DNA of 64,000 bases, from positions 124,001-188,000 of the IMG/VR virus record IMGVR_UViG_3300031963_000004; one strand, written 5' to 3'. Below, piece after piece: positions 8,090 through 44,539 of this stretch (its first letter is position 1; each line of letters starts with the position of its first letter). Position numbers and translations under genes: made by a program. The notes beneath the pieces were generated by a model. It was not told where the DNA came from. It was given only the letters and a program-made list of their open reading frames with translations, and searched no databases.

Positions 8090-8235
8090 TAATCGTCACC
8101 CCTTTGCTGTACCAAGACTTCTTTAGTGTTAGGATCAAAGATTTTGAAAGCTGAACTGAAGTAAAACCCGGATGTTTCGTTGGGCCTGTCTTCTTTTTGT
8201 TGGGTTTGGTTCAAATCTTTAGTATTTTCGTTCAT
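8089..8235 (-). CDS. Small 48-aa protein (not in ORF track), similar to the N-terminus of the downstream gene
   Basis: MNENTKDLNQTQQKEDRPNETSGFYFSSAFKIFDPNTKEVLVQQRGDD; TAATG coupling to 7472..8089; late promoter at 8243-8250. Confidence 0.7.
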   Translation of the reverse strand: MNENTKDLNQTQQKEDRPNETSGFYFSSAFKIFDPNTKEVLVQQRGDD

Positions 8236-8242
8236 AATAATT

Positions 8243-8250
8243 TATTTATC
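8243..8250 (-). promoter_or_regulatory. Late promoter (GATAAATA)
   Basis: Recurrent motif, 7 nt upstream of ATG 8235. Confidence 0.5.
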
Positions 8251-8252
8251 AT

Positions 8253-20200: not shown

Positions 20201-23200
20201 TGTCTGGCAAGAAATATTGAGTTTTATAATCCACTCTGTGTTGACCTATCCAGTTTAAGAAATATGTCGTATATAAATTTTTTGTAAATTCATATGTAAA
20301 ATCAGTTTTTCTAAAATAACCGGATAGAACATCATCGTTGGATACAAAAGTGTTTACATTTAACTTAACATTATTATAAACTCTGCATTCAAATTCAAAT
20401 AATACTCTGTCTCTAAAATCTAATAAAGTACCTTCTTTTGATACTTTACCATATATTCTAGTATATGAGCCATCATGACCTTGTATGAAGTATGCAGGGA
20501 AAACGTATGTATCATCGTAAACCACTTTTGGTTCGAATAAAGGATATAAACCTAACTTGGTTGGAGTATTTGGTACGAAGCTACCATAAGTTTGATTATA
20601 CTCTTTTATTGTAATCTTATCACCAGGTTCTAAATCTAATGTAATAATAACTTTTGGTTCGTCTTGGCTAATTGTATAATCACGATTTCTTAATAGCTGC
20701 GTTATTCGTGTCTCACTCTCTGTTTCTTTAGTTAGGTATATCAAAATTCCATCATAGCTTGCTTTACTAAAATCGTAAATCTTGCTTAATGGAAAGAAAC
20801 TTGTATCTATAAATGCGTTGAATGCGTAGGTATTTGCAGCGAAAGGTGCTCTGCTAGGTATCATGTCACTCCAAAAGAATGAAGTGTTTTGATCCTTATA
20901 GCTTGCGATTTGTTGTAGTGCTAAATCTAATAAATCAGATGCACTCTCTCCGCTATATTCTACTGTTTCAATAATACTTGTAATTAATAATTTAAAATTA
21001 ACATATTCATTTGCACTATAAGTTAATGAATCAAATAAATTAAAATTTTTGTTTCTTAGACATGCCGCAGCATAAATTAATGGGGCACTGTTTTGAATAA
21101 TTTTATCACCATACGTGATTAAATTACCCGCATCTCTGTAATTGTTTGATCCAAAAACTTGTCCTGTCAGTTGTTGACTATTAACAAAAATAGTTTGATA
21201 GTGATTTCTTATATCACCTAAACTTAATGACGCTATCGGTGTGTTAAATGGGTTGCTGCTTAAGTTAATAGGGATAGTATAGTATGCCCCCTCACCCAAT
21301 GGTCCCTCACTGTGTATAAGTACCTCAACAGGGGACTCAGTTACAGGAGGATTTAGTAGTGTAACAATTGTTTCTTTATCAGTTTTAGTAACTGTGTACT
21401 GATCACTGGTTAATATATTTTCATTTACACTGACCTTAATGACTGGCCATGGGCTATCGTTCTGATCTATAGCGACTGCATTACATGTAAATGAATTTTG
21501 TCTTAGTATAGGATTATATGTAAAATTATATGCTTGATACTGAAAGCTTTCACCAACTGTTTTTACCCAACCCAATTCTCTCGTAAATTCATATCTATCC
21601 GTATAGCGATGAGGATAACCTATGCTAACTTTTTCTGTTACAGGTCCTGTCATTAAAGAATATTTGAATACATCTTCATTCAATGATATTCTAAAACTGA
21701 TATCTCCAATATTGGCTACTGAACTGTATGCTAATGGAAACCCTAATACTGGGTCATTTTCGCCCACACCAGGTTTAAATTCAAACAACGTGCAACCTAT
21801 AAAATTACTGCCTGGATAAAAATCTTTATCGGCTAAACTTATATTGTTTTTATCAAAAATATCAAATAATGGTGGTTGATTTACATATGTTTTTTGTTGT
21901 GCTTGATTCCAATATCCTTTATCAAAATAAAAACTCTTTCCACTGTTTGCTGTCCCAAAGTTAACATAAACTTGATCTAGGTCTTGTATGTCGCCATCTG
22001 CTGCCTTTGTAAGAACAATGGTTGGTTCTTGTGTTTCGTTTATTGATGCAAAGTTAATAATGAAAATTTTATTTCTTACATTTGGATCACTGTCGTTTGC
22101 AAAAATAACTCTACTACCTTGAATAGCTTTATACTGATTCCCATCAGGATAATATTCTGTTCTGCCAACTACCCCTATAGTTGGATTACTATTCATTACG
22201 TCAGTTGTAGTATTATCGATAAAGTCTACGTAGCCCTTACCAATGGTTCCTGAATCAAATAATTTTAGCTCAGGATAAAATTCTAAGATAGGTCTATTTG
22301 CTCTGTTTTCTCTATTATTAAGTGCGGCTAAAACTACATCACCCGAAGTGTATTCTGCTGTTGCCTTAAGAACATCTATATGAAACCAACGATTGCTGCG
22401 ACTCCATGCATTTTTATTGATTGCGCTACGATTAATTGTAATATAATCTTTTTGTGCTGGCATTGAAGTTCTGCCACCGTATCTTAGTGTATCGAATCCT
22501 TCATTATCATAGATTGTGTAAATTAGTTGCCCAAATGGTTCTACAATATTTAAATCTTCTGCTTTAATTAATTTTATACTTGTCCCTACTCCTTCAACAT
22601 AATAACTACCTGTTTTATATGGAGCTGGAATAATATTACCAACAAATTTAACTTTTAACCCGTTTGTAAATTGTACACCATTAGGACCTGTATAATTTTT
22701 CTTCCCTAATACATCAGTTTCAATATTAATAGCATTGTTAACTTTGGCATCTAGTAATTTAATTGTTCCTACTTTATTAGGTGTGCTTTCATCTTGATAA
22801 TACAGAGTATCTAATGGGGCAGTTATAATAGGTATTTTTGCTATTTCACCTACAGGCAATCTGACAAACTCTTGACTAACGTATTTTCTCCCGTTCGTTG
22901 CTATAATCTTTTCTGCTATAGGAAGTTCACCATCTTCATCTACGCTTATTATAAAATCATTGTCTAGTTGTAAAAATCTAATTTTATAATAATTATTATT
23001 TGGAATAGTTTTTGGAGCATCATCAAACTCTTTTTCTTCTAGTGAATAGAGATCGTACGGAGTCGGTAGTTCAACTGATTGACCTGGTTTGTAATTTAAA
23101 AATATAACTCTTTTTTCACGGATTTGATTAATACCGTCAATTAATCCCTTAGGATACTTAGATAAAACTTCACTTAACTTTTTACCATGTAATTCACTTA

Positions 23201-23993
23201 TCGGTGTATCAGAAATTAAGTCAACATAATTTTCACCAGAAAAAATCCACTCATCCTGATCAGATGCTTGTGGCACAGTGAATTCGATTATACCGGCATT
23301 TGCACCATTATTTTCAACACCATAAATTTCTCTAGATGTTACATTAGGTCTAATAGGATTTTTACCATTTATACCAGGATCAGTCTGTATCCAAAAGTTA
23401 CTATTTTGATTTACTATAAACTTGTATGTGCCGCCACGAACTAATTTTAGTGTAGGATTACTTTGAGGTATTCTTTTAAAATTTTCTCTTACGGCATAAA
23501 CTGATGAATCTGATATGATTGTAAAGTCGGCTTCACTGTTTACTGTTTCTGTTGTGACTGGTACCTGATCAGGACCGTCAGGTAACCAATAATACTGACT
23601 AAAATTTACAACCTTATCTAAGTCTACAAAACTATCCCAACTATAAAATTCATTTCTAAATAATAAAGAATGGTTATCAGTAATACCATTTTGTGTTTTG
23701 ATAGCATCAATTAATCCAGGGTAGCTTATAAAATCTTTTGCTACAGAAGTCTCTGGTTTAGTAAAGACAACTCCGGGTTCTAATTGATAATTCTGTCTTG
23801 TTGAATTAGGTTCTTTAACATATACGGCATTGGGATCAATACCATATTCAAACTTTCTTCCAATATATCCTTCGACACGTTGTGTGTTAGGTGTCTGAAC
23901 CAATTGGTCTAATGTCGCGCCTAAAAATTCTTCATTAGGCTTGGTTCTAAAAATCTCAGGAAGAAAATCTAAAGTTCTTACTTTATTAACCAT
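8253..23993 (-). CDS. Giant (5246 aa) baseplate wedge protein, gp7-like, with beta-propeller and carbohydrate-binding-like modules
   Basis: Follows gp6; N-terminal LDFLPEIFRT; IKPYH motif; FG-GAP-like repeats (FGHALD..LLVGAP, FAVGAP); S.DG..W propeller repeats; W...Y..GD.V...G..Y.A modules. Confidence 0.75.
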   Translation of the reverse strand: MVNKVRTLDFLPEIFRTKPNEEFLGATLDQLVQTPNTQRVEGYIGRKFEYGIDPNAVYVKEPNSTRQNYQLEPGVVFTKPETSVAKDFISYPGLIDAIKTQNGITDNHSLLFRNEFYSWDSFVDLDKVVNFSQYYWLPDGPDQVPVTTETVNSEADFTIISDSSVYAVRENFKRIPQSNPTLKLVRGGTYKFIVNQNSNFWIQTDPGINGKNPIRPNVTSREIYGVENNGANAGIIEFTVPQASDQDEWIFSGENYVDLISDTPISELHGKKLSEVLSKYPKGLIDGINQIREKRVIFLNYKPGQSVELPTPYDLYSLEEKEFDDAPKTIPNNNYYKIRFLQLDNDFIISVDEDGELPIAEKIIATNGRKYVSQEFVRLPVGEIAKIPIITAPLDTLYYQDESTPNKVGTIKLLDAKVNNAINIETDVLGKKNYTGPNGVQFTNGLKVKFVGNIIPAPYKTGSYYVEGVGTSIKLIKAEDLNIVEPFGQLIYTIYDNEGFDTLRYGGRTSMPAQKDYITINRSAINKNAWSRSNRWFHIDVLKATAEYTSGDVVLAALNNRENRANRPILEFYPELKLFDSGTIGKGYVDFIDNTTTDVMNSNPTIGVVGRTEYYPDGNQYKAIQGSRVIFANDSDPNVRNKIFIINFASINETQEPTIVLTKAADGDIQDLDQVYVNFGTANSGKSFYFDKGYWNQAQQKTYVNQPPLFDIFDKNNISLADKDFYPGSNFIGCTLFEFKPGVGENDPVLGFPLAYSSVANIGDISFRISLNEDVFKYSLMTGPVTEKVSIGYPHRYTDRYEFTRELGWVKTVGESFQYQAYNFTYNPILRQNSFTCNAVAIDQNDSPWPVIKVSVNENILTSDQYTVTKTDKETIVTLLNPPVTESPVEVLIHSEGPLGEGAYYTIPINLSSNPFNTPIASLSLGDIRNHYQTIFVNSQQLTGQVFGSNNYRDAGNLITYGDKIIQNSAPLIYAAACLRNKNFNLFDSLTYSANEYVNFKLLITSIIETVEYSGESASDLLDLALQQIASYKDQNTSFFWSDMIPSRAPFAANTYAFNAFIDTSFFPLSKIYDFSKASYDGILIYLTKETESETRITQLLRNRDYTISQDEPKVIITLDLEPGDKITIKEYNQTYGSFVPNTPTKLGLYPLFEPKVVYDDTYVFPAYFIQGHDGSYTRIYGKVSKEGTLLDFRDRVLFEFECRVYNNVKLNVNTFVSNDDVLSGYFRKTDFTYEFTKNLYTTYFLNWIGQHRVDYKTQYFLPDNQFTYNFDQCKFKLDGEGFKQGNWRGIYLHLYDTTTPHKSPWEMLGFVSKPSWWDERYGAAPYTYDNKILWEDLENGVVYNDGDSYTIPTRKRPGLSKIIPVDSRGNLRNPLDFLTIGTDQPTYDRGWNAGDYGPQEFSYCKSSTYPFDLIKILAIARPAKFFALTQNLDAYNKNAEFNQWLINDRSRITTSFVDYGSGKAQHGYINWIVDYVQSFGLNGNATFKELLNNLDVRLVYRMAGFSDKDLLKFYLEKSSAGSKSNSLLIPDGSFALMLYENEPYDRVIYSSVIVQKTNKGFKVYGNSQNKSYFVQYTPNYNGRYKNITVLETTIYVSENFYKNEIIVPYGSEFVSLEALSEFIINYGRYLEDQGMKFTNIEEGIEINWQQMIAELIYWNLTGWEAGSTININPSANGLVIDKENAIVQPLTLFQQNYALNQNLVPIQLKDLVISRKGTEFTLQTLNTGDSVSYFTANMSTIEHGIVFDNYTQFNDTIYNPITGLRQHRILMKGTKTAEWKGTLDTYGFILNQDNIKDWQSNQRYIKGEIVYYKNSYWMAADRIAAEATFNQTKWIKTDYEKIQKGLLPNASNRSLESELYYDTTNTNLESDANLLAFGLIGYRPRDYLNASNLDDISQVNVYKNIISEKGTRLIADAVQNITLTTGKISYDVYENWALKVSEFGGVENENFVEFIFDETKLTGNPAIVGIVDKMIIPNVMQSIPLNSVINYGRPFSENKIAPVIKANYIEKLPSAGYVHFDDVRVTGYSISSLKNNPITANDVNMDDYIWVADEKDDWLVNTAISISEKNSTVKVVEAVNNLDGTITLRFENQHNLVLGNHFILLKFDYRVDGYYEVKNVTTLDTIVIEVTLPNNVLSIVGEGIVAKFQNQRVSTPSSINNLQLINSGFSKAKVWVDEDTDGTWAVYQKNINYIKQDIVKPNSTGTFGSAIAHHSKLGYFVSDAAQGKIYRYQPDDFEKSKYRANEVIDKFLGVTIGAGFGTQIAIAQDTMIVTKPGTNSTIYVYQIKRTRTGNYVEKPAITINSQRVGDSIALSGDANWLYASSHTVSGNFVRTYKKTAAQTYEFVKTYNLGGDLQDFSKITLSTNYNGSKLFIGAPLKNYGTSPNQIVNVGMAAVLNRVIEKIDVKRDYVEDTEVYYNLSVSAPTTDHYLDVFVNGKLIENTKYQITVAGLQFLYDLKAGDVIEISYPDLFKTQEFQLTNLAEIRPGNAFGHALDTNRHGSELLVGAPFFVSENNLEGLVVRYTNYGKKYGIIQATNNYSLASSSKILINGYQVTLPTNLLGAVNAINDANITNVYARVVDNKLVIGLVDPNLGPIEEKLTIQALNSTTLQQIGILEYQESQRISDPENVEGASQFGFSIKFNEYNSFAVGAPTSTRKSLTTFDFTDDLDTTNDTIFDNNYTKFVDELGSAGSVYIYDYLANHNESADKLGKFVYSQAANDTTLDIGANPHYGKVIEFKDYNLIIGCPDYKPGVDNGRIVFYENKQNLRNWHVLRKSNDVIDVNRLQNIQIFNAENNERIESLDYIDPLQGKLLGIVTENIDYISSQDPAGYNSQLTTGNLVWGDAFVGKIWFDTSTTKFLNYHQEDVLYNAQNWGKIFPGSTVTIYTWIESNVLPVNYQGPGTPYNIEYYTSLYNVDNSGALTNKYYYWVRSTNILSSDKTLPDSILEQYITDPQSSGIGYFAALQNNVYGLFNAIDSIKGKSTGLHIGFTDKIKKDDSYNEFKLIKDGNPNDFLPGVPSAYTAFEMPESLYDKLLDSLSGIDERGNLVPDIHLPKLLQQGIKVRPRQSFFSNRLKALENYCKYVNSVLIKHPISEILTPSFIGESNKESVPKGAPGFLTTSGEFFNTPDYWEHVYWWADGYNNNTKPDVEVLKYYDLATLNPFENMLAGVTTNSDGKREVYLYTNGDWVRVGLEQGTIQIKESLWNYEILGLGFGNTFYDTDSFDVFPHTETRYIVRSVTEEIFTNELLIHRNKSLITLFEYIISEATSTNCYLTWLNKTSLVDVTNTLRELKADLNYRSDNQDFLQGYLKEIKPYHVVMKEFAIKYTVNDTYDGQLTDFDLPAQYDFNLGKFITPNLTFFPVTAVGEFGPTDAIWNRSIYFDWLDNYGLSLTGQKSVTIGSLTKYITPVSETIYIDNAYGLPVNGVVKINNEYIGYAGVDRDAGKLTFVSRGLRGSVASDHNPNSKVIIDLPEVVVLNTGRNYIDVPTVIAYIDTTRYPAPLREAVLEPIMADDKVVGVKVVDSGAGYAATPEIIIQASKTFKFNSSVVNFLVNSINIDSVDLNTGDVVRFVHGEGNPIKGLANKKYYHVRVLWKDEVFGAKSIIALYSTAVNAQLDNHRIDLIDTGSSTDNKLELTARAVAVASNTPTREISTKLKFDRTSYVSKVTEWKSGEFYASEFSPSGDESSTSSISASGSTLSSVQHRVFDIQEVTLEEGTNEVAVSIDYTGSSLSPGQLKGLPLYFYVVPPTYMYPQHVKVKDIIIGNQYKILSLGDTNWNFMAGTTGLTYNVGDSIKPVVRGMGTGVVTAFLAPNNLEYDKWYVIAELGDTRWDLIAQTEGIIYQVGNRIWIEDLSPSNFGSTPGKAIEEGHALIKFYRPNFVFNKVYNEYFVEVFNKGTIYNVGDKITVDGVYLGGVSGANDATIKVVYTQANKMELYELSGLAVGAFKQYYVKPINQTQLKVYHDAPMVRPVIASQVWKGNKSYKRGDIVLANGKYYRAIADVEPTTVSARSIVKDKSYYVKTVGLIDWTVIGADTANELAGTEPFTATANGNIFINASAFVYLNEFNPAGYVRLEDNPFPFDNNSYMYLPEPVQLTSGYSRTTSSIVSLNNRLYKCLVSNNDTEFDFDKWQVLDSNKEELNALDRIVGFYQPTTNMPGKNLPLLLTGVDYPNNTYYSNKFDENYTLDTQLKDQPFYPKDIKIRSVLWDNEKYLAVADGRDYSMILLSYDEGITWQIKRISADVLEVSDVIHSGTHYVLTTRKPSNPVFISYDGLSWLGLGSYTPYDKVDFDEPGEAWDSSSLTAPSGGLYNVASHNDFYVAAGDQLVASTDAYAWDSVYSFQSRTEARANYIDYINSEFYAGFIAVGYGLDVIEDPTEEVSAQVTTIGRVLLSENGRAWTPIYPHPTNNGLNTVVGGPEMIVLGGDNGTVLYSTNMQNIFAGTIEGDTITDNILAGCYAANTFVFVGQNGLILVSYDGMSWSKITSGTNQNLNSVTHDGQHFLAVGNNATILRSWEGLVWQNVSAIGGANTFYEVKGDPFTSGYGPEEMVPGAITDQFSMTVITRSGSTWNPEVYQHNGYKVIGNKVSPNGVEIDFSNFSQAPAQLALSIMDPLSNLSKMIHPNVTPTDNNEYTYSVDWIQKKITLNKEIRETEIILVEVYEFGNGNQLVRATSDDIPVTIDESTGHSQIVFNIKYEELLTADPAVYINGEKKTFTNDYVIASTDNGRTKLLFDRVYDTTVNFISFVLFGSTVQNYGYSLPETQVFEFDSTGQTGLALDYQLIENENDYIPRIVRVNGLELPITDYTITIGPVSTLAIIPTLNEGDIISITTFNDTREQYFLQESISTLRVTPLLAVAIDKDVVYLYITTETDEDPGLTTGDLIQIDGISGTNQLNNNTYYMKLETKFSETFTEYDDEGTETSYTKDVYPITLWFNDSLSRPVTSRFLSEYVGGGFVWKYEDTHVIPQTIDISDKTRLNVSVNGIRLGSDGLRLNDGNYLSILADIKPDDVIMITSMVSSATPNEMIYVNEVDKNGDQFIYRANSSNRTWLTENLEPLQDVIHVKDVSKLIDIVEDTYIVVADSDRLLVRIIYDLETIKETEVYNETTLSKLNSSDFTLLTNNSVAYLVFRNGVSEGDQINVVMRLGDTINVNGEKIRYSKVDYQNNTISNLKRGIQGTAINKMHLKYSSVVGITPSNTLFNFYYNRSWNSEIYNDTAGDPLQISDSAPAKFLQQGTK

Positions 23994-35995: not shown

Positions 35996-37009
35996 ATGGC
36001 AAATTTATTTAATAAAGCAGCAGTATTCACAGATATACATTTTGGTTTAAAGTCAAATAGCTTACAGCACAATCAAGATTGTGAAAAGTTTGTAGATTGG
36101 TTTATCTCCCAAGCAAAGAAAGAAGGGTGTGAGACTTGTTTCTTCTTGGGAGATTATAACCATCACCGTGCTAGTATAAACATTCAGACCATGCAATATG
36201 GTTTAAGAGCATTGGAAAAACTTAATGATAATTTCAGTAGCGTCTATTTTATCCCCGGTAATCATGATTTGTATTATAGGGATCGTCGTGATATACATTC
36301 AGTAGAGTGGGCTAAACATTTACCAAATGTAAAAATTATCAATGATTGGTTCGTAACAAACGATGTAGTCATTGCTCCATGGCTTGTACAAGAAGACTGG
36401 AAGCGTTTACAAAAGATGGGCGGCAAGTATCTATTCGGTCATTTTGAATTGCCTAGATTCTATATGAATGCTATGGTAGAGATGCCTGATCATGGTGAGC
36501 TTAATGATACGCATATGGTTGGCTTTGAAAAAGTATTCAGTGGTCATTTTCATAAACGTCAAGCACGTAGTAATGTATGGTATATTGGTAACGCATTCCC
36601 GCATAACTATGCTGACGCAGGCGATGACGCTAGAGGCATGATGATACTTGAATGGGGAAGTGAGCCAGAGTTTGTTAGTTGGCCAGATCAACCTAAATAT
36701 CGTGTTTATAAACTAAGTGAAATTTTAGAAAATCCAGAAGGATTATTACTAAAAGATTCTCATGTAAGAGTTCATTTAGATATAGATATAAGTTACGAAG
36801 AGGCTAATTTCATTCGTGAGACACTAATACCACAACATAGTTTACGTGAAATGGCATTGATACCAATGAAACTAGATACTATGGCAACTGATTACACAGG
36901 CGAATTAAAGTTTGAGTCAGTTGACCAAATTATACTTGATCAAATAAGTTCTATTGAAAGTGAATTTTATGATCAAAAGTTGTTGCTGGACATATATAGA
37001 AATCTATGA
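35996..37009 (+). CDS. gp47: Recombination endonuclease subunit (gp47/Mre11/SbcD-like)
   Basis: Metallophosphoesterase motifs FTDIHFG, LGD, GNHD, GHFE and SGHFH. Confidence 0.92.
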   Translation: MANLFNKAAVFTDIHFGLKSNSLQHNQDCEKFVDWFISQAKKEGCETCFFLGDYNHHRASINIQTMQYGLRALEKLNDNFSSVYFIPGNHDLYYRDRRDIHSVEWAKHLPNVKIINDWFVTNDVVIAPWLVQEDWKRLQKMGGKYLFGHFELPRFYMNAMVEMPDHGELNDTHMVGFEKVFSGHFHKRQARSNVWYIGNAFPHNYADAGDDARGMMILEWGSEPEFVSWPDQPKYRVYKLSEILENPEGLLLKDSHVRVHLDIDISYEEANFIRETLIPQHSLREMALIPMKLDTMATDYTGELKFESVDQIILDQISSIESEFYDQKLLLDIYRNL

Positions 37010-38766
37010 TTTTATTAAAAAATATTACATTACGAAACTTTCTAAGTATCGGAGCAGTAACACAAGCAGTTGATTTTAACAGATCGGATTTAACTCTTAT
37101 CTTAGGTGAAAACTTAGACCTAGGTGGCGACGGTGCCCGTAACGGTACGGGTAAAACCACATTGATTCAGGGACTCTGTTATGCGTTGTTCGGTAATCCA
37201 ATCAATAACATTCGCAAAGATAATCTAGTAAATCGAACAAACGGTAAGGGTATGTTAGTTACCCTAGAGTTTGAGGTTAACGGTGTTTCTTATAAAATAG
37301 AAAGAGGTCGTAAGCCGAATATACTTAGATTCTATGCAAACAATGAGCAAACATCTAAAGATGATGCGCAGGGTGAAAATAAAGAAACGCAAGCTGAGAT
37401 AGAAAAAGTCATTCACATGAGTTTGGATATGTTCAAGCATATCGTTGCGTTGAACACGTACTCTGAACCGTTCTTAGCTATGAAGGCTAACGACCAAAGA
37501 AACATCATTGAGCAATTACTTGGCATTACATTGTTAAGTGAGAAAGCAGAAGTAATTAAGGGCTTAATTAAAGATAGCAAAGATAATATTCAACAAGAGG
37601 AATTTAAAATAAAAGCTATTGAAGAAGCAAATAAAAGAGTTAAGGAGCAGATTGATTCATTAAGACGCAGACAGACGCTTTGGAAGCAAAAGCATGAAAC
37701 GGATTTGTCTGCTTTAGTTACAAAATATGATGAGTTGTCAAAGCTTGACATTGCGATAGAGTTGAAGGCGCACAAAGACTTGGCAGCTTATAATGAGAAG
37801 GTTAAAGATAAGACCGAAAAACAAAAATGGTTGACAAGTGCTGAGCTTTCGTTAGCCAAAGAAAACAAGTTGTTAGAAAAGCTTAATCTTGAGGTTGAGA
37901 AATTAAGAAAACATGAATGTTATGCTTGTGGTCAAACAATGCATGACGCTAAGCATGAAGAGGTTCTTGCTAGCAAAGAAAAGCAGTTACAGGAAACTGC
38001 GTTGCAAGTTTTATCTACCTCAGGTCAAATAGATGAATTAATAACACAAATTGCAGACATAGGCGACGTGGGTTCTATGCCTAAATGTTTCTATGATACT
38101 GAACAGTTGGCGTTCGAACACGCAGGTAAGATAACTAGCCTAGAAGAACAGATTGCTAAAAAATCAGAAGAAACTGATCCATATGCAGAACAAATCACTG
38201 ATATGGAAAATCAAGCATTACAAACTATAGACTTTGATGCAATCAATAAGATTACTAGGGTTATGGAGCATCAAAAGTTCCTATTAGATTTGTTAACAAG
38301 CAAAGATAGTTTTGTTCGTAAAAAGATTATTGATCAGAACCTAAGTTATTTGAACGCAAGATTGACACACTATCTTGACAAGATTGGACTACCCCATCAA
38401 GTTATATTCTTAAATGATCTAACCGTAGAAATTACAGAGTTGGGTCGTGAATTAGACTTTGATAACTTGTCTAGAGGTGAGCGTAATAGATTGATACTAG
38501 GATTAAGTTTTGCTTTTCGTGACGTGTGGGAGAACTTGTACACCCCAATCAATGCATTGTTTATTGACGAATTAATTGACAGTGGTCTCGATACTATGGG
38601 CGTTGAAAATAGTATTGCGATTTTAAAAGATATGTCACGTAGACGACAAAAATCTATTTGGTTAGTATCACATAGAGAAGAATTAGCAGGAAGGGTGCCT
38701 AGTGTCTTGAAGGTTATAAAAGAGGGTGGATTTACCTCATACTCATCCGCAGCCGAAATAGGATAA
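37006..38766 (+). CDS. gp46: Recombination ATPase subunit (gp46/Rad50/SbcC-like)
   Basis: Walker A NGTGKTT, coiled coil with CYACG zinc hook, LSRGE signature, Walker B FIDE and VSH. Confidence 0.95.
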   Translation: MILLKNITLRNFLSIGAVTQAVDFNRSDLTLILGENLDLGGDGARNGTGKTTLIQGLCYALFGNPINNIRKDNLVNRTNGKGMLVTLEFEVNGVSYKIERGRKPNILRFYANNEQTSKDDAQGENKETQAEIEKVIHMSLDMFKHIVALNTYSEPFLAMKANDQRNIIEQLLGITLLSEKAEVIKGLIKDSKDNIQQEEFKIKAIEEANKRVKEQIDSLRRRQTLWKQKHETDLSALVTKYDELSKLDIAIELKAHKDLAAYNEKVKDKTEKQKWLTSAELSLAKENKLLEKLNLEVEKLRKHECYACGQTMHDAKHEEVLASKEKQLQETALQVLSTSGQIDELITQIADIGDVGSMPKCFYDTEQLAFEHAGKITSLEEQIAKKSEETDPYAEQITDMENQALQTIDFDAINKITRVMEHQKFLLDLLTSKDSFVRKKIIDQNLSYLNARLTHYLDKIGLPHQVIFLNDLTVEITELGRELDFDNLSRGERNRLILGLSFAFRDVWENLYTPINALFIDELIDSGLDTMGVENSIAILKDMSRRRQKSIWLVSHREELAGRVPSVLKVIKEGGFTSYSSAAEIG

Positions 38767-38814: not shown

Positions 38815-39462
38815 ATGTTTATCAAAAACGAATCATATATTAGATACTATGAAATAATTGAAAATGCAAATAAAATTTGCCCAAGAACTATAAAAAAGAC
38901 TGAAGCAATGGAAATTAGAGGGTACATTGAAGATCATCACATCATACCTAAATGTTTAGGTGGAAAAGATGTTCTTTCTAACAAAGTATGGTTAACCGCA
39001 GAAGAACATTTCATATGTCATAAACTACTCACAGAAATGACGGTTGACACTGCTAATGGTAAAATGTGGAGTGCATTGTGGCGAATGATGAATAAACAAA
39101 GCAAAAATCAATCACGTGATTATCAAATAGATGCAAAAGAATATGCAATAGCTAGAGAACAAAATGCAAAAAATCATAGCATTAGGATGCAAGGTAGTTT
39201 GAACCCGTTTCATAATAAAAAACATTCTGATTCTACTAAAGAAGTTATGTCTGCTAAGAAAAAAGGTAAATCATACGAAGAAATTTTTGGTGCGACTAAG
39301 GCAAAAGAAATGCGACTCCGCAGAAGTAAAGAATCATTAGGAAAATTAAAAGGTCCTCAACAAAAAATTAAATGTTTGCATTGCGGGTCTGAAGGTGGGT
39401 TAGGGATTATGAAACGGTGGCACGGTGATAGATGTAAAAATTTAAATAACATACTAAAATGA
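38815..39462 (+). mobile_element. Free-standing HNH homing endonuclease with NUMOD3-like DNA-binding motif
   Basis: EDHHIIPKCLGG...N.V.LTAEEHFICHKLL; NPFHNKKHS..TK..MS; C-terminal C..C...RWH...C. Confidence 0.85.
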
Positions 39463-39944
39463 AATCGACATTATATCTAGATATGGACGGGGTCGTAGCT
39501 GACTTCAACAAATATGCGTATGACGTATTACGTGCGCCACCAACTGAGGGAGTTTACCCTAATGAGAAGTGGGTTAAGTTGCGTGATAATGAAAGATTGT
39601 ACAGAGATTTAGATAAAACTTCTTATGCGGATGAACTTATTGAGTTTTGTAGAGAGTTCGCATGGAACAAGTACAATTTAATATTTTTAACTGCTGTACC
39701 AAAAAACAATGACATGCATTGGTCATTCTACGATAAGGTAATGTGGGCGCACAAACATTTTCCAAACATACCTGTTCACTTTGGTCCGTTTAGTAAAGAT
39801 AAACATGTCCATTGTGTAATGGGAGACATATTAATTGATGACAGAACCAGCAACATAGAAGAATGGCGTAGTGCTGGTGGCATTGGAATACATCATAAAA
39901 CATTTAAAGATACAATTGAACAACTAAAAAATCTGCAGGATTAA
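39459..39944 (+). CDS. HAD-family 5'(3')-deoxyribonucleotidase-like protein
   Basis: LYLDMDGVVADF, LTAVP, K..W and ILIDDR..NI.EW...GG.GI. Confidence 0.85.
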   Translation: MKSTLYLDMDGVVADFNKYAYDVLRAPPTEGVYPNEKWVKLRDNERLYRDLDKTSYADELIEFCREFAWNKYNLIFLTAVPKNNDMHWSFYDKVMWAHKHFPNIPVHFGPFSKDKHVHCVMGDILIDDRTSNIEEWRSAGGIGIHHKTFKDTIEQLKNLQD

Positions 39945-39964: not shown

Positions 39965-40525
39965 ATGCCATCACCACAGAAAGCTAAAGGATCAGGATTT
40001 GAGCGAGAAATTGCTAAGTATCTCAGTGAAACATACGGAGAGAGCTTTATTCGTGCGCCCGGATCCGGTGCTTATATAGGTGGCAAAAATCAGAATCGCA
40101 CTCAGATATTACATGAGGGCCAGATTCGCAGTTTCAAAGGGGATATTGTTCCCGGAGAAAGTTTTCCAAAATTCAATGCAGAATGTAAGTTCTATAGTGA
40201 CTTTGCATTTCATTTGTTGCTAACAGGTGAACATAAGGTTTTAGATGGTTGGATACAACAATTACTTGATGTAGCTGACCCGGGTGATTGCAACATACTT
40301 TTTATGAAGTTTAATAGAATAGGAAGATATGTAGCAGTGCAATGTCACTTAACATGGATCATTGATAATTTTACTTTTTATGCAAGTAAAAAAGTTGGTG
40401 ATTGGTATATAATAGAATTTGATCATTTTATGGCTCACAATAAAAATTTACTCAAGGCATATTCAGGCAACACAGGCACATCAGACACCAAGTCAAGCAC
40501 TTCATTACTTACAATAGACATTTAA
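39965..40525 (+). CDS. Putative Holliday junction resolvase (PD-(D/E)xK, Hjc-like)
   Basis: KAKGSGFEREIA..L...F.R.PGSGA...GDI...AECK. Confidence 0.75.
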   Translation: MPSPQKAKGSGFEREIAKYLSETYGESFIRAPGSGAYIGGKNQNRTQILHEGQIRSFKGDIVPGESFPKFNAECKFYSDFAFHLLLTGEHKVLDGWIQQLLDVADPGDCNILFMKFNRIGRYVAVQCHLTWIIDNFTFYASKKVGDWYIIEFDHFMAHNKNLLKAYSGNTGTSDTKSSTSLLTIDI

Positions 40526-40983
40526 TACAATTCGACGGTCAAGTTGTTGACCCTCCTTGAGGACGTACAGGTAGTGCTGTGCTGACGGATCTGGAGTACG
40601 CCTAAGATTAATCTTAGGGAACACCGACAGGGCAATCGTGTGGAGCGAACCCTGAATGAGTACATAGTTAACTTTGTCTTGCGACTATGTAACATGCGTT
40701 GCTGAGGCGTTATTTATAAGAAATAATAGTCTCACTACAGTCCCAATAAACTTTACAGAGCAACCGGTGGCGATTGACAGCGAAAAGGGCTAGTTAGTCG
40801 GGGAATAGACAACATGGGTGACGGTCATGGCAAGTAACCTTTACCAATGGTAGTGCTGAATAGCACTACCATGGATTCAAATCGGCAATTAGTTAATATA
40901 ATCCTATAATAAGAATAAGTCCGAACAAACGAATGAGCGATAGCGAATGAGTGTGAAGGACTTAGATTAGCGAAGCTAATCTC
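40526..40983 (+). ncRNA. Unclassified ~460-nt highly structured non-coding element (putative RNA)
   Basis: No ORF of 60 aa or more; GC-richer than the flanks; at least 10 helices, including nested CACCG/CGGTG and GTTGCT/AGCAAC pairings; G-U wobbles work only on the + strand. Confidence 0.65.
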
Positions 40984-41160
40984 TTAAAAGAATGGCATCT
41001 GAGATTTTTTTGTGGTTTCTAGGTTTTCTTCAATAATTTCGTTTAATGATTGGAGTTCTTCCGGGCTCATGTTTAATACATCTTCATAGGATACAGCTCC
41101 GCGCATATACCAGGCTATACGTTGTGCATTTTTCTTAATAGCCTTAACGTCTTTCTCCAT
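40984..41160 (-). CDS. gp51-like baseplate/tail assembly chaperone (58 aa from ATG; probably expressed as a -1 frameshift extension of the upstream gene)
   Basis: MEKDVKAIKKNAQRIAWYMRGAVSYEDVLNMSPEELQSLNEIIEENLETTKKSQMPFF; the frame stays open back to the slippery site at 41214-41220. Confidence 0.75.
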   Translation of the reverse strand: MEKDVKAIKKNAQRIAWYMRGAVSYEDVLNMSPEELQSLNEIIEENLETTKKSQMPFF

Positions 41161-41169
41161 GCCTTCTAT

Positions 41170-41220
41170 AAGCTTCCCGATACCCTCGGAGTCGAGGTAT
41201 AGAAGCTTTATTCGAAAAAA
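41170..41220 (-). promoter_or_regulatory. -1 programmed ribosomal frameshift signal (U UUU UUC, 5-nt spacer, stem-loop)
   Basis: mRNA reads GAU UUU UUC GAA UA AAGCUUC U AUACCUCG ACUC CGAGG G UAU CGG GAAGCUU. Confidence 0.75.
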
Positions 41221-42041
41221 TCGCTGATGTTCAACGTGAATGGTTGATCATATTCATGCTTACAATGTGTACATGCAATATGTAATGGTTTAATTTGTGT
41301 GGTTTCTCTTAATTTAATGCTGGTTTCACGAATCATTTCAAAGGTTTTCTTATCGGTATTATTGAGAAAATCTTTAATATAAGCCTTTTCAGATACTACT
41401 GCTTCAGGTGTAGCTATGTATTCTATAACATTAACTAATACATCAATTGTGCTGTCCCCGATTATTTTGAGAATTTCGGTACTTCTAGCCTCACGTTCTG
41501 GGCCTTCTTCCATAGAGTTTAGAGTGATAAATGCTCTTTGAATTTCTAATTGCCTTGCAGTGCTATTAGTAAGTTCTTTGTACATTAATGGTCTAAATTT
41601 AATACGTAAATTATCAATCATTAATGGTCTATCATAATCACCCGGGGCGAAGTTATTAAGTACAAAACTTAAATTTAATCCAAACTTACTATCTTCATTA
41701 CAATTTGGACATGTAGTATCTAAATCCATATCATTACCATTAGTCGCTATTTTAATAGCAACTAATATAGCATCCAAATCAACACTGCTTATAGCCCATG
41801 GGTCTTTAATACTAGGTACACAACTGCGTATTATCTCAGCCACCGCTGATCCATTGTATAATGCATCAGGTGTTTTACTGGTTATCTCATCAATAGCAGT
41901 CATAGGATAAACTGGTAGTTCACCAGTTTCTGTCATAACCAAAACATCAGGACCATATCCTTTCCCTTGAGTTGGTAATTTTAAATAGATTCCTGGTCTG
42001 CGAAAGTATTGCTTAAGTGGGTTATGTTCGATACTGCTCAT
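41208..42041 (-). CDS. Baseplate hub/tail assembly chaperone, T4 gp26-like
   Basis: NPLKQYFRRP.IY.KLP..G, PMTA.DE..KTPDAL.NG, D.DAIL.AI.IAT.G, two CxxC motifs (CPNC, CTHC) and C-terminal DFF. Confidence 0.75.
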   Translation of the reverse strand: MSSIEHNPLKQYFRRPGIYLKLPTQGKGYGPDVLVMTETGELPVYPMTAIDEITSKTPDALYNGSAVAEIIRSCVPSIKDPWAISSVDLDAILVAIKIATNGNDMDLDTTCPNCNEDSKFGLNLSFVLNNFAPGDYDRPLMIDNLRIKFRPLMYKELTNSTARQLEIQRAFITLNSMEEGPEREARSTEILKIIGDSTIDVLVNVIEYIATPEAVVSEKAYIKDFLNNTDKKTFEMIRETSIKLRETTQIKPLHIACTHCKHEYDQPFTLNISDFFE

Positions 42042-42070
42042 TCTATCTCCTAAAACGGTAATTTTTTGCG

Positions 42071-42097
42071 ACTAAATATAATAGTCAAATATTTAGT
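42071..42097. promoter_or_regulatory. Inverted pair of late promoters (ACTAAATAT...ATATTTAGT) serving the divergent gp26-like and tape-measure-like genes
   Basis: Perfect 9-bp inverted repeat in which each arm contains CTAAATA. Confidence 0.55.
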
Positions 42098-42109
42098 GGC
42101 AAAAAACAC

Positions 42110-44539
42110 ATGGCTGATATTCCTGATGACTTAAGAGATACAAGCGAAGATGCTTCCAGAGCGGCTAGGGAAGCTGCCAACGCCCTACGTAGGGCAGTAG
42201 AAGCAGAAGCAGAAAAAAGAGAAAGAATAGAAAGAGCTAAAGCCGGAGTTGAGCAGTTAGCCGGAAGTGCCATATCCTTTTCAAGAACTTTAACTGAAAA
42301 TTCGGGGAGTATGGGAAAATACGGATCTGCTATCGATCAAGCAGCTTCAGGGGTAGGTGATTTAGTAAGCTTGTTAGGACCTTTTGGTATAGTCGCAGGT
42401 TTATTAATAAAAGTTGTAGGTAAACTTGTAGGACAGGTTTTAAAAACAGACGATACTCTTATTCAGGGGTATGACAAATTAGCAGAGATGGGAGGTGCTA
42501 CTGCATTTAGCACCGACGGCTTAAGAGATTTAGCACTTGAAATGAAGTGGACTGTTAGCGACGGTGCATTTACGCAACTAGTAGATGTGGTCGCTGAATT
42601 TGGTAACAACGTAACAGGATTGGGCACAACAGCTGGCGTTGGTATTAAAAACTTCATGAAAATTGTCGAGATGGAACCTGTTGTTAGGGAAGAATTCACA
42701 CGCTTAGGTATAGGACAAAAAAAGGTAGCGCAATTACAAGCTTCATATCTTGCTAATGAAATAAAATTAGGTGGCCGTAGATACAAAGATAATGAAACTT
42801 TAAGAAAAGAATCATTATCTTATATAAGAAATTTAGTTGAGTTAAGTGCCTTAACTGGTGAAAATATTGATGAGATTAAGAAAAGGCAAGAAAACGATTT
42901 AAAAGACATTGGATATAATCTAGCGTTGCAAGAAAGAATGCAACAAAAGAATGGTCAACAACTTAAGTTGAATATTCAAAGAGGTGTTGAACTAGCAGGC
43001 CAAGTTGATGAAGGCTCACGTAAAGCAGTTATGGAAGTTGTTGCTAAGGGATCTGCCGTTGGTCCTGCCGCTGCTGCGCTACAGCAACGATTTAGTATGG
43101 CTGGTTTAGATTTTGTAGAAACAGTGCAATCATTCGAAAAGGGAATGATTAAAGAAGATGAGTTTAGAAGAAGATTTCAACAAGCTAATAAGGCTACATT
43201 TGAAAAATTAGGAAAAGGATTCCAACTAGATGCGCAAGGTTTAAGCAATGTTTATGCGATTTCTGCAAAAACAATGGAATTCCAATCTAAAACGATTGGT
43301 GAAAACACATCGCAGCAAGTAAAAGACGATGTTAAAAATGTCAAAGATAGAAAAGACGAAATAAAAGATGGTCAAGTTGCGATTCAAGATGCAACTACTC
43401 AATTAACCAGAGCGTTTGATGAATTTATAAAATTAATTTCTGGACCTGTACATGCTGCATTCAAAGGATTAATTTATTCATTGCAGGCATTAACTAAAGG
43501 TATAACGAAGTTTGTAAATTTTATTGGCTTAGCTAAAAATTTCGGTGATAAGTCTAAAGTAGATCCTACTATGCCATTTGCGTTTGATTCTATTGAAGAA
43601 TTACTTGATCAACAGATCGAATCAAATAAAGAAATGATTCGAATAGAAAAATTATTTAAAGAAAAAGGAACATCACCTAAATCAAAATTTGAAGATCCAA
43701 ATTCTGTAAAGGCCCTACTTAAGAATCCATCTTTAGTTAAAGAAAGATACAACTATCTTGAAGCAGAAGAAACATACAGGGGAACAACCCAACAATTAGA
43801 AAAACTTTTAGGTACTGAAGGATATAAAAAAGCATTAGAAGAAAGAGAGAAAAATTTAAGAGAAGGTAAAACAAAAGAAGAAGCGGCAAATAAGGAAGCA
43901 GCGAAGAATCAGCAACCAAAAGAATCAGCTACCGCAAATACTGTTGGACCACCTCAAACTCCTACAAGTACAACTACTGCGACGGTAAATACTAACGAAC
44001 AACCAAGAACAAGTACATCTGCTCCTAGCAATGGTCAACAACCAACACAAAAATTTATGCGAGGTGGTATCGCTAGGAATCCAAATCAAGCTAATAGCCT
44101 TGTTTCACATTTAGGTGGAAATGCCAAAATACCTTTACCGAATGGTATTAATTTACCAGCTGATGTTTCTTTATCTGAAGATTTACTATCAAAATTAATG
44201 TCAGCACAACCCGGTGCTAGTAATAACACTGACATTTTTGCATCACTTCAAAATGCTATGCAAAATATGAAAATAGATGCCGTACCTGCTAATTTTGAAA
44301 TGAATAGTAAAAATATATTGAGAGATACGGATAATATGGATAGTATTACAGGTAACTATGCAGAAACACTTAAAAAATCAATTGATAATACTATTAAGAT
44401 GCCCGAAAAATCTCAAATGAAATCTAATAATGTTAATGATATTTTATCTGTTATAGTTGAAAAAATGGATGTTTTAGCTAGTAAGATGAATGAAAACGTA
44501 GATAATCAATATACTACTTTACTAAAGAGTAGAAGATAA
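42110..44539 (+). CDS. Tape-measure-like protein 1
   Basis: Long Ala/Gly/Lys-rich helical protein with a hydrophobic segment (LLGPFGIVAGLLI); paralogous to the next gene; next to the chaperone gene. Confidence 0.6.
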   Translation: MADIPDDLRDTSEDASRAAREAANALRRAVEAEAEKRERIERAKAGVEQLAGSAISFSRTLTENSGSMGKYGSAIDQAASGVGDLVSLLGPFGIVAGLLIKVVGKLVGQVLKTDDTLIQGYDKLAEMGGATAFSTDGLRDLALEMKWTVSDGAFTQLVDVVAEFGNNVTGLGTTAGVGIKNFMKIVEMEPVVREEFTRLGIGQKKVAQLQASYLANEIKLGGRRYKDNETLRKESLSYIRNLVELSALTGENIDEIKKRQENDLKDIGYNLALQERMQQKNGQQLKLNIQRGVELAGQVDEGSRKAVMEVVAKGSAVGPAAAALQQRFSMAGLDFVETVQSFEKGMIKEDEFRRRFQQANKATFEKLGKGFQLDAQGLSNVYAISAKTMEFQSKTIGENTSQQVKDDVKNVKDRKDEIKDGQVAIQDATTQLTRAFDEFIKLISGPVHAAFKGLIYSLQALTKGITKFVNFIGLAKNFGDKSKVDPTMPFAFDSIEELLDQQIESNKEMIRIEKLFKEKGTSPKSKFEDPNSVKALLKNPSLVKERYNYLEAEETYRGTTQQLEKLLGTEGYKKALEEREKNLREGKTKEEAANKEAAKNQQPKESATANTVGPPQTPTSTTTATVNTNEQPRTSTSAPSNGQQPTQKFMRGGIARNPNQANSLVSHLGGNAKIPLPNGINLPADVSLSEDLLSKLMSAQPGASNNTDIFASLQNAMQNMKIDAVPANFEMNSKNILRDTDNMDSITGNYAETLKKSIDNTIKMPEKSQMKSNNVNDILSVIVEKMDVLASKMNENVDNQYTTLLKSRR

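Follow-up and report, generated by a model that had tools for sequence, protein, structure and literature searches.

What fills the stretch left free between two sets of convergent genes in a giant T4-like phage genome, and is it the site of a functional RNA? The question is raised by positions 40526 to 40983 of the window, as we call the whole 64,000-nucleotide stretch of DNA that was analysed. To the left of this interval, all on the + strand, lie an SbcC-like gene (37006-38766), an HNH homing endonuclease gene (38815-39462), a 5'-nucleotidase gene (39459-39944) and a PD-(D/E)XK "resolvase" gene of 186 aa (39965-40525; Pfam PDDEXK_15, 1.6e-23; RusA-like resolvase in PHROG), the PDDEXK_15 domain of which is complete (profile positions 2-161 of 164). 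To the right, on the - strand, are a conserved ORF of 58 aa (40984-41160) and a gene for a T4 gp51-like baseplate hub (41208-42041; Pfam T4_baseplate, 3.7e-18). The interval is therefore bounded by convergent genes, and it closes a block of recombination and replication genes (SbcD, SbcC, resolvase). The closest cultured relatives of the flanking proteins belong to the jumbo phages Phosso, SCTP-2, PA5oct, Atu_ph07 and Rak2-like, with an amino-acid identity of only 30-48%. When ORFs of at least 90 aa are counted, the window contains only two internal ORF-free stretches of 150 nt or more, 8090-8252 and 40526-41207, and subtraction of the 58-aa gene from the latter leaves 458 nt free. A previous sequence-only reading had described this gap as the only long one without ORFs and as GC-richer than its flanks, and had inferred that it harbors an undescribed large structured phage noncoding RNA on the + strand. 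Both descriptions held, the first for internal gaps at the 90-aa cutoff and with the conserved minus-strand gene of 58 aa placed inside the gap, the second with a GC content of 0.42-0.445 over 40500-40899 vs 0.31-0.39 in the flanks.

A first collection of 160 IMG/VR loci, fetched with the hub and resolvase proteins, contained the element in 157 cases according to blastn. A second search, with a motif from the element (ACTACAR..TAMAG...AACCGGT), yielded at least 118 new IMG/VR loci, 116 of them with the whole RNA, and at least 120 metagenome loci, 87 of them with real copies, including a TARA scaffold and ENA "marine metagenome" contigs. Altogether, 245 full-length copies corresponding to 154 distinct sequences were available. 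The carrying contigs reach 524,565 bp and correspond to uncultured jumbo phages of 200-525 kb. One RNA is present per window, and second, weak model matches (57231-81 in our window, and 17285-349 in locus L483, described below) were judged to be noise. The conservation profile delimits an element of about 355 nt on the + strand, from approximately 40537 to 40893 (the nhmmer envelope being 40540-40911), which corrects the end at 40880 previously proposed. The remainder, 40894-40983, is an A/T-rich, non-conserved spacer with two local hairpins that ends at the stop codon of the convergent 58-aa gene, and no alignment among homologues was obtained past about 40910.

Beyond these loci the element was not recovered. 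No match was found by blastn against 50,697 GenBank phage records; neither the core covariance model nor nhmmer detected a homologue in the resolvase regions of the cultured jumbo phages Phosso, SCTP-2 and PA5oct, or in 35 loci sharing only the search motif; and none of 81 motif matches in GTDB genomes was real, the one scoring 10.8 bits (L404) being attributable to chance. The RNA family is confined so far to a clade of uncultured jumbo phages. Since the cultured jumbo phages carry homologous resolvases without the RNA, it is not needed by all relatives.

The element is kept in the resolvase-to-hub interval of related jumbo-phage contigs, and in tblastn searches both the 58-aa ORF and the hub gene adjoin it in nearly all loci. 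Wherever the flank suffices, apart from the rearranged locus described next, the gene order is resolvase (+), RNA (+), and then the 58-aa and hub genes (-). Three hub-bearing loci had no match: in L045 the flank stops just past the hub, and in L018 and L050 other genes on the + strand come after the 58-aa gene. A longer piece of the L018 contig, L483, explains the missing match: it carries the hub and 58-aa genes in inverted orientation, the resolvase comes directly after SbcC, and the RNA (98 bits with the core model) is found just 3' of the resolvase, on the resolvase strand. As the hub is inverted in this locus and the RNA still follows the resolvase, the RNA is tied to the resolvase gene and not to the hub, and the resolvase lies upstream on the same strand in every locus with enough flank. 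L483 is also the most divergent member of the family. As for the resolvases themselves, those linked to the RNA have at their C-terminus an additional tail, about 20 aa long, missing in PA5oct, Phosso and SCTP-2 (186 aa vs roughly 165-174 aa), and the PDDEXK_15 family is common in phages without the RNA.

A protein-coding explanation does not account for this conservation. No conserved ORF was found in the element, as the longest open frames vary in frame and length among 55 representatives, and indels among homologues are not multiples of three; the small-ORF reading fails for these two reasons. An AUG located 3' of the last hairpin was likewise rejected as a start, because a 1-nt insertion shifts the frame though the bases are conserved.

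The folding statistics point to RNA. On the + strand the single sequence folds at -138.3 kcal/mol (z = -4.07, with none of 100 shuffles as good), vs z = -2.69 on the - strand. RNAalifold, applied to 46 sequences, returned 62 pairs, 40 of them with compensatory changes. A core covariance model of 195 positions, which covers only the core and not the full length, was used to align 72 sequences; in this alignment 98.7% of cells pair, compared with 29-36% in controls whose partners were slid by 1-3 columns, 31 of 40 core pairs have changed in a compensatory way, and covariation scores 0.547 vs 0.04-0.07 in the controls, none of 500 shuffles reaching any of these measures. On a tree of the 154 distinct sequences, single pairs underwent 10-19 independent double changes. 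The usual test for a structured RNA, compensatory pairs beyond controls and on one strand, is therefore met. Across homologues, G-U pairs outnumber A-C ones by 456 to 88, from which it follows that the RNA corresponds to the + strand; the same argument had been advanced for the single sequence, and it held. These data bear on the proposal that the conservation reflects a DNA-level element (a packaging site, an origin or a cruciform) or a chance structure. In its favor, the arms of the 3' hairpin do not vary and form a perfect inverted repeat, as in operator-like DNA sites. Against it stand the strand asymmetry of G-U and A-C, the existence of pseudoknots, and loop-length changes that preserve the hairpin and not the spacing of half-sites, whereas chance is countered by the 500 shuffles, none of which matches the observed covariation. 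We regard this explanation as highly unlikely.

Pair counts, made on 67 sequences below 87% identity, confirmed helices H1, H1b, H2, H3, H4 (inner 3-bp stem), H5, H6, H7 and H8. The RNA opens with the 5' hairpin H0 (40537-40552, GGTCAA/TTGACC with a 4-nt loop), whose sequence varies while the hairpin is kept in the alignments, its pair counts being blurred by the MAFFT register. H1 (CUCC/GGAG, 40553-56 with 40593-96) is 100% canonical in the 67 sequences, with double changes CG<->UA and UA<->CG at three of its four pairs; this covarying long-range helix replaces the CCTC..GAGG hairpin of the single-sequence fold. Within its span (40553-40596) it encloses a conserved UUGA, the hairpin H1b (40561-86, inner stem 40565-70/40577-82, where the commonest pair at 40566-81 is U-G) and a conserved GGAUCU. 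The following hairpin, H2 (40601-40618), has compensatory changes at all seven pairs and is capped by a GNRA tetraloop (GUGA, GCGA, GCAA or GUAA) in 103 of 154 sequences, the copy in the window having UUAA. A K-turn in the H1/H1b loop was considered and did not fit when judged by eye.

The central multibranch domain is closed by H3 (40622-26 with 40765-69; 98.6% paired), whose outer pair is UA in 36 sequences, CG in 19, UG in 8 and AU in 3. Inside it, H4 (40628-32/40650-54) is 100% paired with compensatory changes at four of five pairs, both sides of pair 40630-40652 having changed together about 19 times on the tree; it continues into an inner UCG/CGA stem (40636-38/40646-48) with conserved GCAAU and GAAC bulges. 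H5 (40656-58/40693-95 and 40661-68/40684-91) is 99% paired, 10 of its 11 pairs being compensatory, and carries a 15-nt loop, L5 (40669-83). H6 (40698-703 with 40759-64; 96.5% paired, 4 of 6 pairs compensatory) encloses a variable hairpin of 9-109 nt, H6a (40704-32), which adopts a hairpin fold in about 95% of the 154 sequences, and a conserved internal loop, J6 (40733-58), that contains ACUACAG, UCCC and AC.UUACAG. The ACUACA motif is invariant in the main clade, and the full ACUACAG becomes ACUGCGG in L483. Beyond the domain, H7 (40771-78/40793-800 and 40779-81/40789-91) is a hairpin with one bulged A, 98.4% paired and compensatory at 10 of 10 pairs.

An all-against-all covariation scan detected two pseudoknots that the sequence-only reading lacked. 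The first, PKB (UCCC/GGGA), joins J6 at 40741-44 with 40801-04, immediately 3' of H7; it is 96-100% canonical with double changes at all four pairs, and its pair 40741-40804 is UA in 109, CG in 24, AU in 8 and GC in 6 of 154 sequences, with 14-17 changes on the tree. The second, PKA (UUGUCU/AGACAA), joins L5 at 40674-79 with 40807-12; it is 97-100% canonical, five of six pairs are compensatory, and the tree of 154 sequences shows 10 joint changes of the two bases of pair 40674-40812. In L483, H0, H1, the junction and PKB are kept, and PKA extends to 8 bp made of new letters. Mutual information further revealed complementarity between 40752 and 40769 (UA 95, CG 22, UG 20, AU 17). Because 40769 also pairs with 40622, and the letter at 40622 equals that at 40752 in 134 of 154 sequences, the contact of 40752 (perhaps with C40751) to 40769 (and G40770) may be a base triple or an alternative pair.

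The 3' domain begins with region P (40813-40846, consensus AAUGGAUGACGGGCAUGGCAA), a highly conserved segment in the conservation profile, in which an optional small hairpin (40823-25/40837-39) is missing in some homologues. It is followed by the 10-11 bp hairpin H8 (40847-40872). Its stem shows 96-100% identity across the 67 sequences and is unchanged in L483, while the loop is variable; the loop-closing pair switches UA<->AU, and loop insertions lengthen the stem. The conserved tail (40873-40893), which reads GGCUUCAAAGCGGCAAU in most homologues, lacks its GGCAAU end in L483 and in two other lineages, and conservation ends near 40893. Positions 40825 and 40882 covary in a non-Watson-Crick manner, both being G or both U, and about 16 changes of this state are seen on the tree; no resolvase or hub residue was associated with it. 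We do not claim a pairing between ACUAC in J6 and the 5' strand of H8, as the complement spans only 5 nt with a chance expectation of about 0.65 for an RNA as long as this one, by our own estimate. Judged by eye, a T-arm reading of GGCUUCAAAGC does not fit, CsrA-type GGA sites are too few and lie inside a complex fold, and no consistent closing pairing was seen between the 5' leader and the 3' tail.

In sum, 40537-40893 is a real, conserved, single-copy noncoding RNA gene on the + strand, with a multi-domain and doubly pseudoknotted structure. Its two pseudoknots and possible base triple come on top of about 14 helices, and it also has GNRA loops and long stretches of unpaired, invariant bases. 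The helices of the sequence-only reading were all present in the sequence at the positions given, and comparative support held for GGTCAA/TTGACC, GTACAG/CTGTGC, the 40601-18 hairpin, CACCG/CGGTG, CAGGG/CCCTG, TACATAGT/ACTATGTA, GTTGCT/AGCAAC, the variable inner hairpin and the hairpins at 40771-40800 and 40847-72. The covariation measured here is massive, and the core inference of an undescribed large structured phage RNA is supported. The statement that the element is almost fully base-paired was an overstatement, as a tally of the listed helices gives about 55% of bases paired in the comparative model, with invariance at many of the unpaired ones.

Does the RNA belong to a described class? 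None of the 4227 models of Rfam 15 reached its gathering score anywhere in the window, and a laxly filtered search of 40300-41300 at E<=10 brought up only three chance matches, all outside the element; Rfam likewise returned nothing on the resolvase regions of Phosso, SCTP-2 and PA5oct, and ARAGORN found no tRNA or tmRNA gene in the 64 kb. The earlier reading, which did not recognize a tRNA, tmRNA, group I/II intron or riboswitch, thus held, and no description of the RNA was found in the literature searched. The idea that the models missed a strongly diverged representative of a known class (group I intron, RNase P RNA, tmRNA, GOLLD or ROOL) may draw on some resemblances. The RNA is similar to the group I introns of T4-like phages in size, in a GNRA-capped peripheral hairpin, in its occurrence in T4-like phages and in its strand order (stem 5', pseudoknot 5', stem 3', hairpin, pseudoknot 3'). 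The succession H3 5'...PKB 5'...H3 3'-H7-PKB 3' recalls P3...P7-P3'-P8-P7' of group I, the closest known counterpart in strand topology, although the likeness is only partial: an extra helix, H6, encloses the pseudoknot 5' strand, and PKA, which reaches a hairpin loop, has no group I counterpart. In addition, the RNA interrupts no gene, being placed between convergent genes next to a complete resolvase domain, and Intron_gpI gave no match at E<=10. As for RNase P RNA, ACAGUCC and ACAGAGCAACCGGU recall its two P4 strands, but this candidate was rejected, as there is no Rfam match and the look-alike motifs pair elsewhere (in H3, H6 and PKB). With no Rfam match in the element at E<=10 under lax filters and no tmRNA according to ARAGORN, a missed known class appears very improbable.

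The element is closest in kind to GOLLD and ROOL, which it resembles in being phage-borne and large, with many covarying helices, long-range pairs of pseudoknot type, no associated protein and unknown function. It differs from them in that it matches neither family model, is not beside tRNA genes, and occupies a fixed syntenic site after the resolvase gene of lytic jumbo phages. GOLLD and ROOL measure roughly 600-800 nt, vs about 355 nt here. It shares with the phi29 pRNA, an RNA of about 174 nt, the condition of a structured phage-encoded RNA, the latter forming oligomers through loop-loop pairing, and it is located beside morphogenesis genes; there is nevertheless no similarity between the two, and T4-type packaging motors are not known to use an RNA. 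The sole large survey of intergenic structures in IMG/VR (Fremin et al., 2023; PMC10690425) resembles our study in its source and in its covariation-based logic, and the motifs it reported are all 29-151 nt long. Fragments of the RNA may be present in that list; the whole pseudoknotted RNA is not described there. We conclude that the family is new and uncatalogued, and that it has precedents in GOLLD and ROOL within the category of ornate orphan phage RNAs.

The precedents raise the question of whether PKA forms within one molecule or between molecules, both of which are possible and cannot be separated by covariation. In ROOL and GOLLD, covarying contacts between loops and strands had at first been taken for pseudoknots and turned out to join separate molecules (PMC12286853). 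By extension, PKA could be an intermolecular bridge through which the RNA self-assembles into rings or cages. This alternative is favored by the comparable ROOL/GOLLD contacts, by the strongly covarying junction in PKA of a hairpin loop with a distant single strand, and by a phage-borne RNA without known protein partner, as in those families. On the other hand, covariation is blind to this distinction, PKA lies 2 nt from PKB on one strand, an arrangement suited to an intramolecular coaxial stack, and the RNA is half the size of ROOL, with no tRNA genes nearby. We therefore consider self-assembly unlikely.

How might the RNA be produced? It starts about 10-14 nt 3' of the resolvase stop codon on the same strand (about 11 nt in the window), after an A/U-rich spacer (40526-40536) in which most homologues keep a semi-conserved ATAAAAATT.GT.G motif, according to an anchored consensus of 152 distinct upstream sequences. 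From sequence alone, we infer that this spacer leaves no room for a separate promoter outside the resolvase ORF. No T4 late promoter motif (TATAAATA) was found upstream of the RNA, the motif being depleted in the window (3 found vs 11.9 expected), and a sigma-70-like match at 40882-40910 was rejected, since homologues do not share it and there is nothing for it to transcribe. No terminator-like structure (a G+C-rich hairpin with a U-tract) was found in 40526-40983, where H8 is followed by GGCUUCAAAG. Because the RNA begins about 11 nt after the stop codon, co-transcription with the resolvase gene is the most likely origin; the transcript would then probably be trimmed to a stable molecule, with H0 protecting the 5' end. 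An origin by processing of the upstream mRNA is plausible by likeness to the 3'-UTR-derived sRNAs CpxQ and SroC, in which a stop codon, an A/U-rich stretch and a hairpin at the presumed 5' end also follow one another. Those sRNAs, however, are 50-150 nt long, of simple structure, and act with Hfq by base-pairing, whereas the present RNA is of about 355 nt, globular and pseudoknotted.

Such a location also admits a role in cis. A riboswitch or other 5' leader was rejected, given that no + strand gene lies downstream and the next genes are convergent, as they are in all homologous loci. A cis-acting 3'-UTR element with no role of its own, which would stabilize the resolvase mRNA by blocking 3' exonucleases or act as an insulator toward the convergent hub operon, would explain why the RNA is always close 3' of the resolvase stop, on the same strand and between convergent units, and why it stays with the resolvase when neighbors rearrange. 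Conversely, a simple hairpin would suffice for this purpose and the RNA is far more elaborate, there is no U-tract terminator, and related resolvase genes do without the RNA. A function as a cis control element, in this or another form, thus seems improbable to us.

The constant neighbor suggests as well that the RNA might serve the adjacent PD-(D/E)XK nuclease as a guide, activator or regulator. The adjacency of gene and RNA is invariant in >350 loci and survives rearrangement, and the C-terminal tail of the linked resolvases could be cited in support. Against this, PDDEXK_15 proteins are widespread in phages without the RNA, RNA variants do not co-vary with resolvase residues, and no variable guide-like segment with matches elsewhere was seen, so that we hold a partnership of this type to be most doubtful. 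Still less support exists for a replication primer or origin RNA (cf. ColE1 RNA II, T4 oriF/oriG) transcribed toward the A/T-rich 40894-40983. It would be consistent with a position at the end of the recombination/replication block and with a non-conserved A/T-rich stretch 3' of the RNA; however, a primer could do without GNRA loops, double pseudoknots and invariant bases at the junction, the DNA 3' of the RNA lacks conservation, and no special switch in skew was observed around the region. This possibility also ranks as very unlikely. Strictly, the sequence data neither confirm nor exclude the roles suggested by the sequence-only reading, namely ribozyme, packaging or scaffold RNA, and replication primer.

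The reading we favor, as somewhat more likely than not, is that of a stable trans-acting RNA, catalytic or scaffold; this is an inference made without data on transcripts, catalysis or partners. In the comparative fold, the 3' strand after H7 runs straight into the 6-bp PKA pairing with the H5 loop, and the flanks of H7 pair back to the H6 internal loop through PKB and the 40752/40769 contact. According to the proposed model, the strand GGGA-AU-AGACAA would in this way staple the H5 loop and the H6 internal loop together into a compact core with invariant unpaired bases. Such a design, as in ribozymes and in ligand- or protein-binding RNAs, may provide an active site or a binding pocket. The invariant 3' domain (region P, H8 and tail) is, by inference, the likely surface for contact with a partner. 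The RNA would probably act in trans during infection, either as a catalyst or as a scaffold on which a protein or more copies of the same RNA assemble, and its fixed place in essentially every member of a large clade leads us to infer a core step of the phage cycle rather than an accessory gene for defence or counter-defence. Some considerations weigh against this trans-acting reading: the promoter, ends, stability and action in trans are inferred without transcript data; a fixed position after one gene is also what a cis-acting 3'-UTR element would show; neither a partner protein nor a ligand or substrate has been identified; and the invariant H8 stem has no tested explanation.

Very few classes of large, intricately folded RNAs are known outside the ribosome, RNase P and self-splicing introns, and the discoveries of OLE, GOLLD, ROOL, HEARO and raiA each opened a line of work. 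The comparative support is unusually clean, almost every helix and two pseudoknots being established by repeated independent double changes in 154 distinct sequences, and the RNA reported here may well represent a new functional RNA class, for which it is a strong candidate, its function not having been shown. Entire RNAs of such a length can escape motif catalogues that stop at about 150 nt. The molecule is small enough for chemical probing and cryo-EM, and a concrete hypothesis to start from is offered by its constant location behind the gene of a recombination nuclease. A bolder reading, which remains possible, is that of a new natural RNA machine of this giant-phage clade, either a large ribozyme or a self-assembling RNA-only particle; if true, a ribozyme active site would be located in the junction stapled by PKA and PKB, and an RNA derived from the 3' end of a DNA-repair gene transcript would be needed for a core step of infection.

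Two dependencies within the RNA, a conserved structured noncoding element of approximately 355 nt (40537-40893, + strand) lying directly 3' of the resolvase gene, extended beyond simple pairing. Position 40825 (region P) and position 40882 (3' tail) covaried across the 154 distinct full-length homologues, with approximately 16 switches on the tree; G/G was found in 76 of the 154 and U/U in 44, a letter pattern that is not Watson-Crick. The local contexts of both positions are alike (G.CAUGGCAA and A.C-GGCAA), and this similarity suggests either a tertiary contact or one binding motif present twice. Further, position 40622 shares its letter with position 40752 in the J6 internal loop, each being complementary to 40769, the partner of 40622 in the outer pair of helix H3 (U/U/A, C/C/G and A/A/U for 40622/40752/40769), a dependence compatible with a major-groove base triple or with two mutually exclusive pairs.

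Further elements were noted in the sequences flanking the RNA. The 3'-terminal part of the resolvase gene contains a GACAC-N3-GTC motif (40484-40494), where the window copy, GACACCAAGTC, encodes ..DTKS... Among homologous loci, this motif was conserved as nucleotides within the C-terminal tail of the RNA-linked resolvases, the rest of which is variable; it lies approximately 40-90 nt upstream of the RNA with variable spacing, is duplicated in some loci, and occurs 3 times in the 64 kb against 0.66 expected. It may constitute a site acting at the RNA level or bound by a protein. On the other side, two local hairpins were identified at 40926-40983 (AAGTCC..GGACTT and AGATTAGC-GAA-GCTAATCT), immediately past the convergent 58-aa gene's stop codon; these could mark where the transcript of the hub operon ends, and neither is accompanied by a U-tract on either strand.

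Gene order around the RNA differed between the window and L483, the contig carrying the most divergent RNA copy. In the window, HNH homing endonuclease and 5'-nucleotidase genes separate SbcC from the resolvase (38815-39944), whereas both are missing from L483 (61-2733), in which SbcC is directly followed by the resolvase; this block resembles a mobile insertion. Relative to the window (40984-44539), the L018/L483 lineage has its hub and 58-aa genes in inverted orientation (L483 3347-11055), and a 2188-aa Phage_lysozyme2 protein gene converges on the RNA in their place. Separately, the structural gene block of the window harbors a single 5246-aa ORF (8253-23993, - strand), neighbored by ORFs of 1120, 934 and 883 aa.

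Regarding cultured relatives, a stretch of approximately 1-1.5 kb precedes the resolvase gene in Sinorhizobium phage Phosso (L161 4987-6000), with no annotated genes, and in PA5oct (L163 4479-5991), whose sole ORFs are 'hypothetical' and of 38-50 aa. Neither stretch was matched by Rfam, nhmmer or the 195-position covariance model of the RNA core; conceivably, they contain noncoding RNA unrelated to that of the window.
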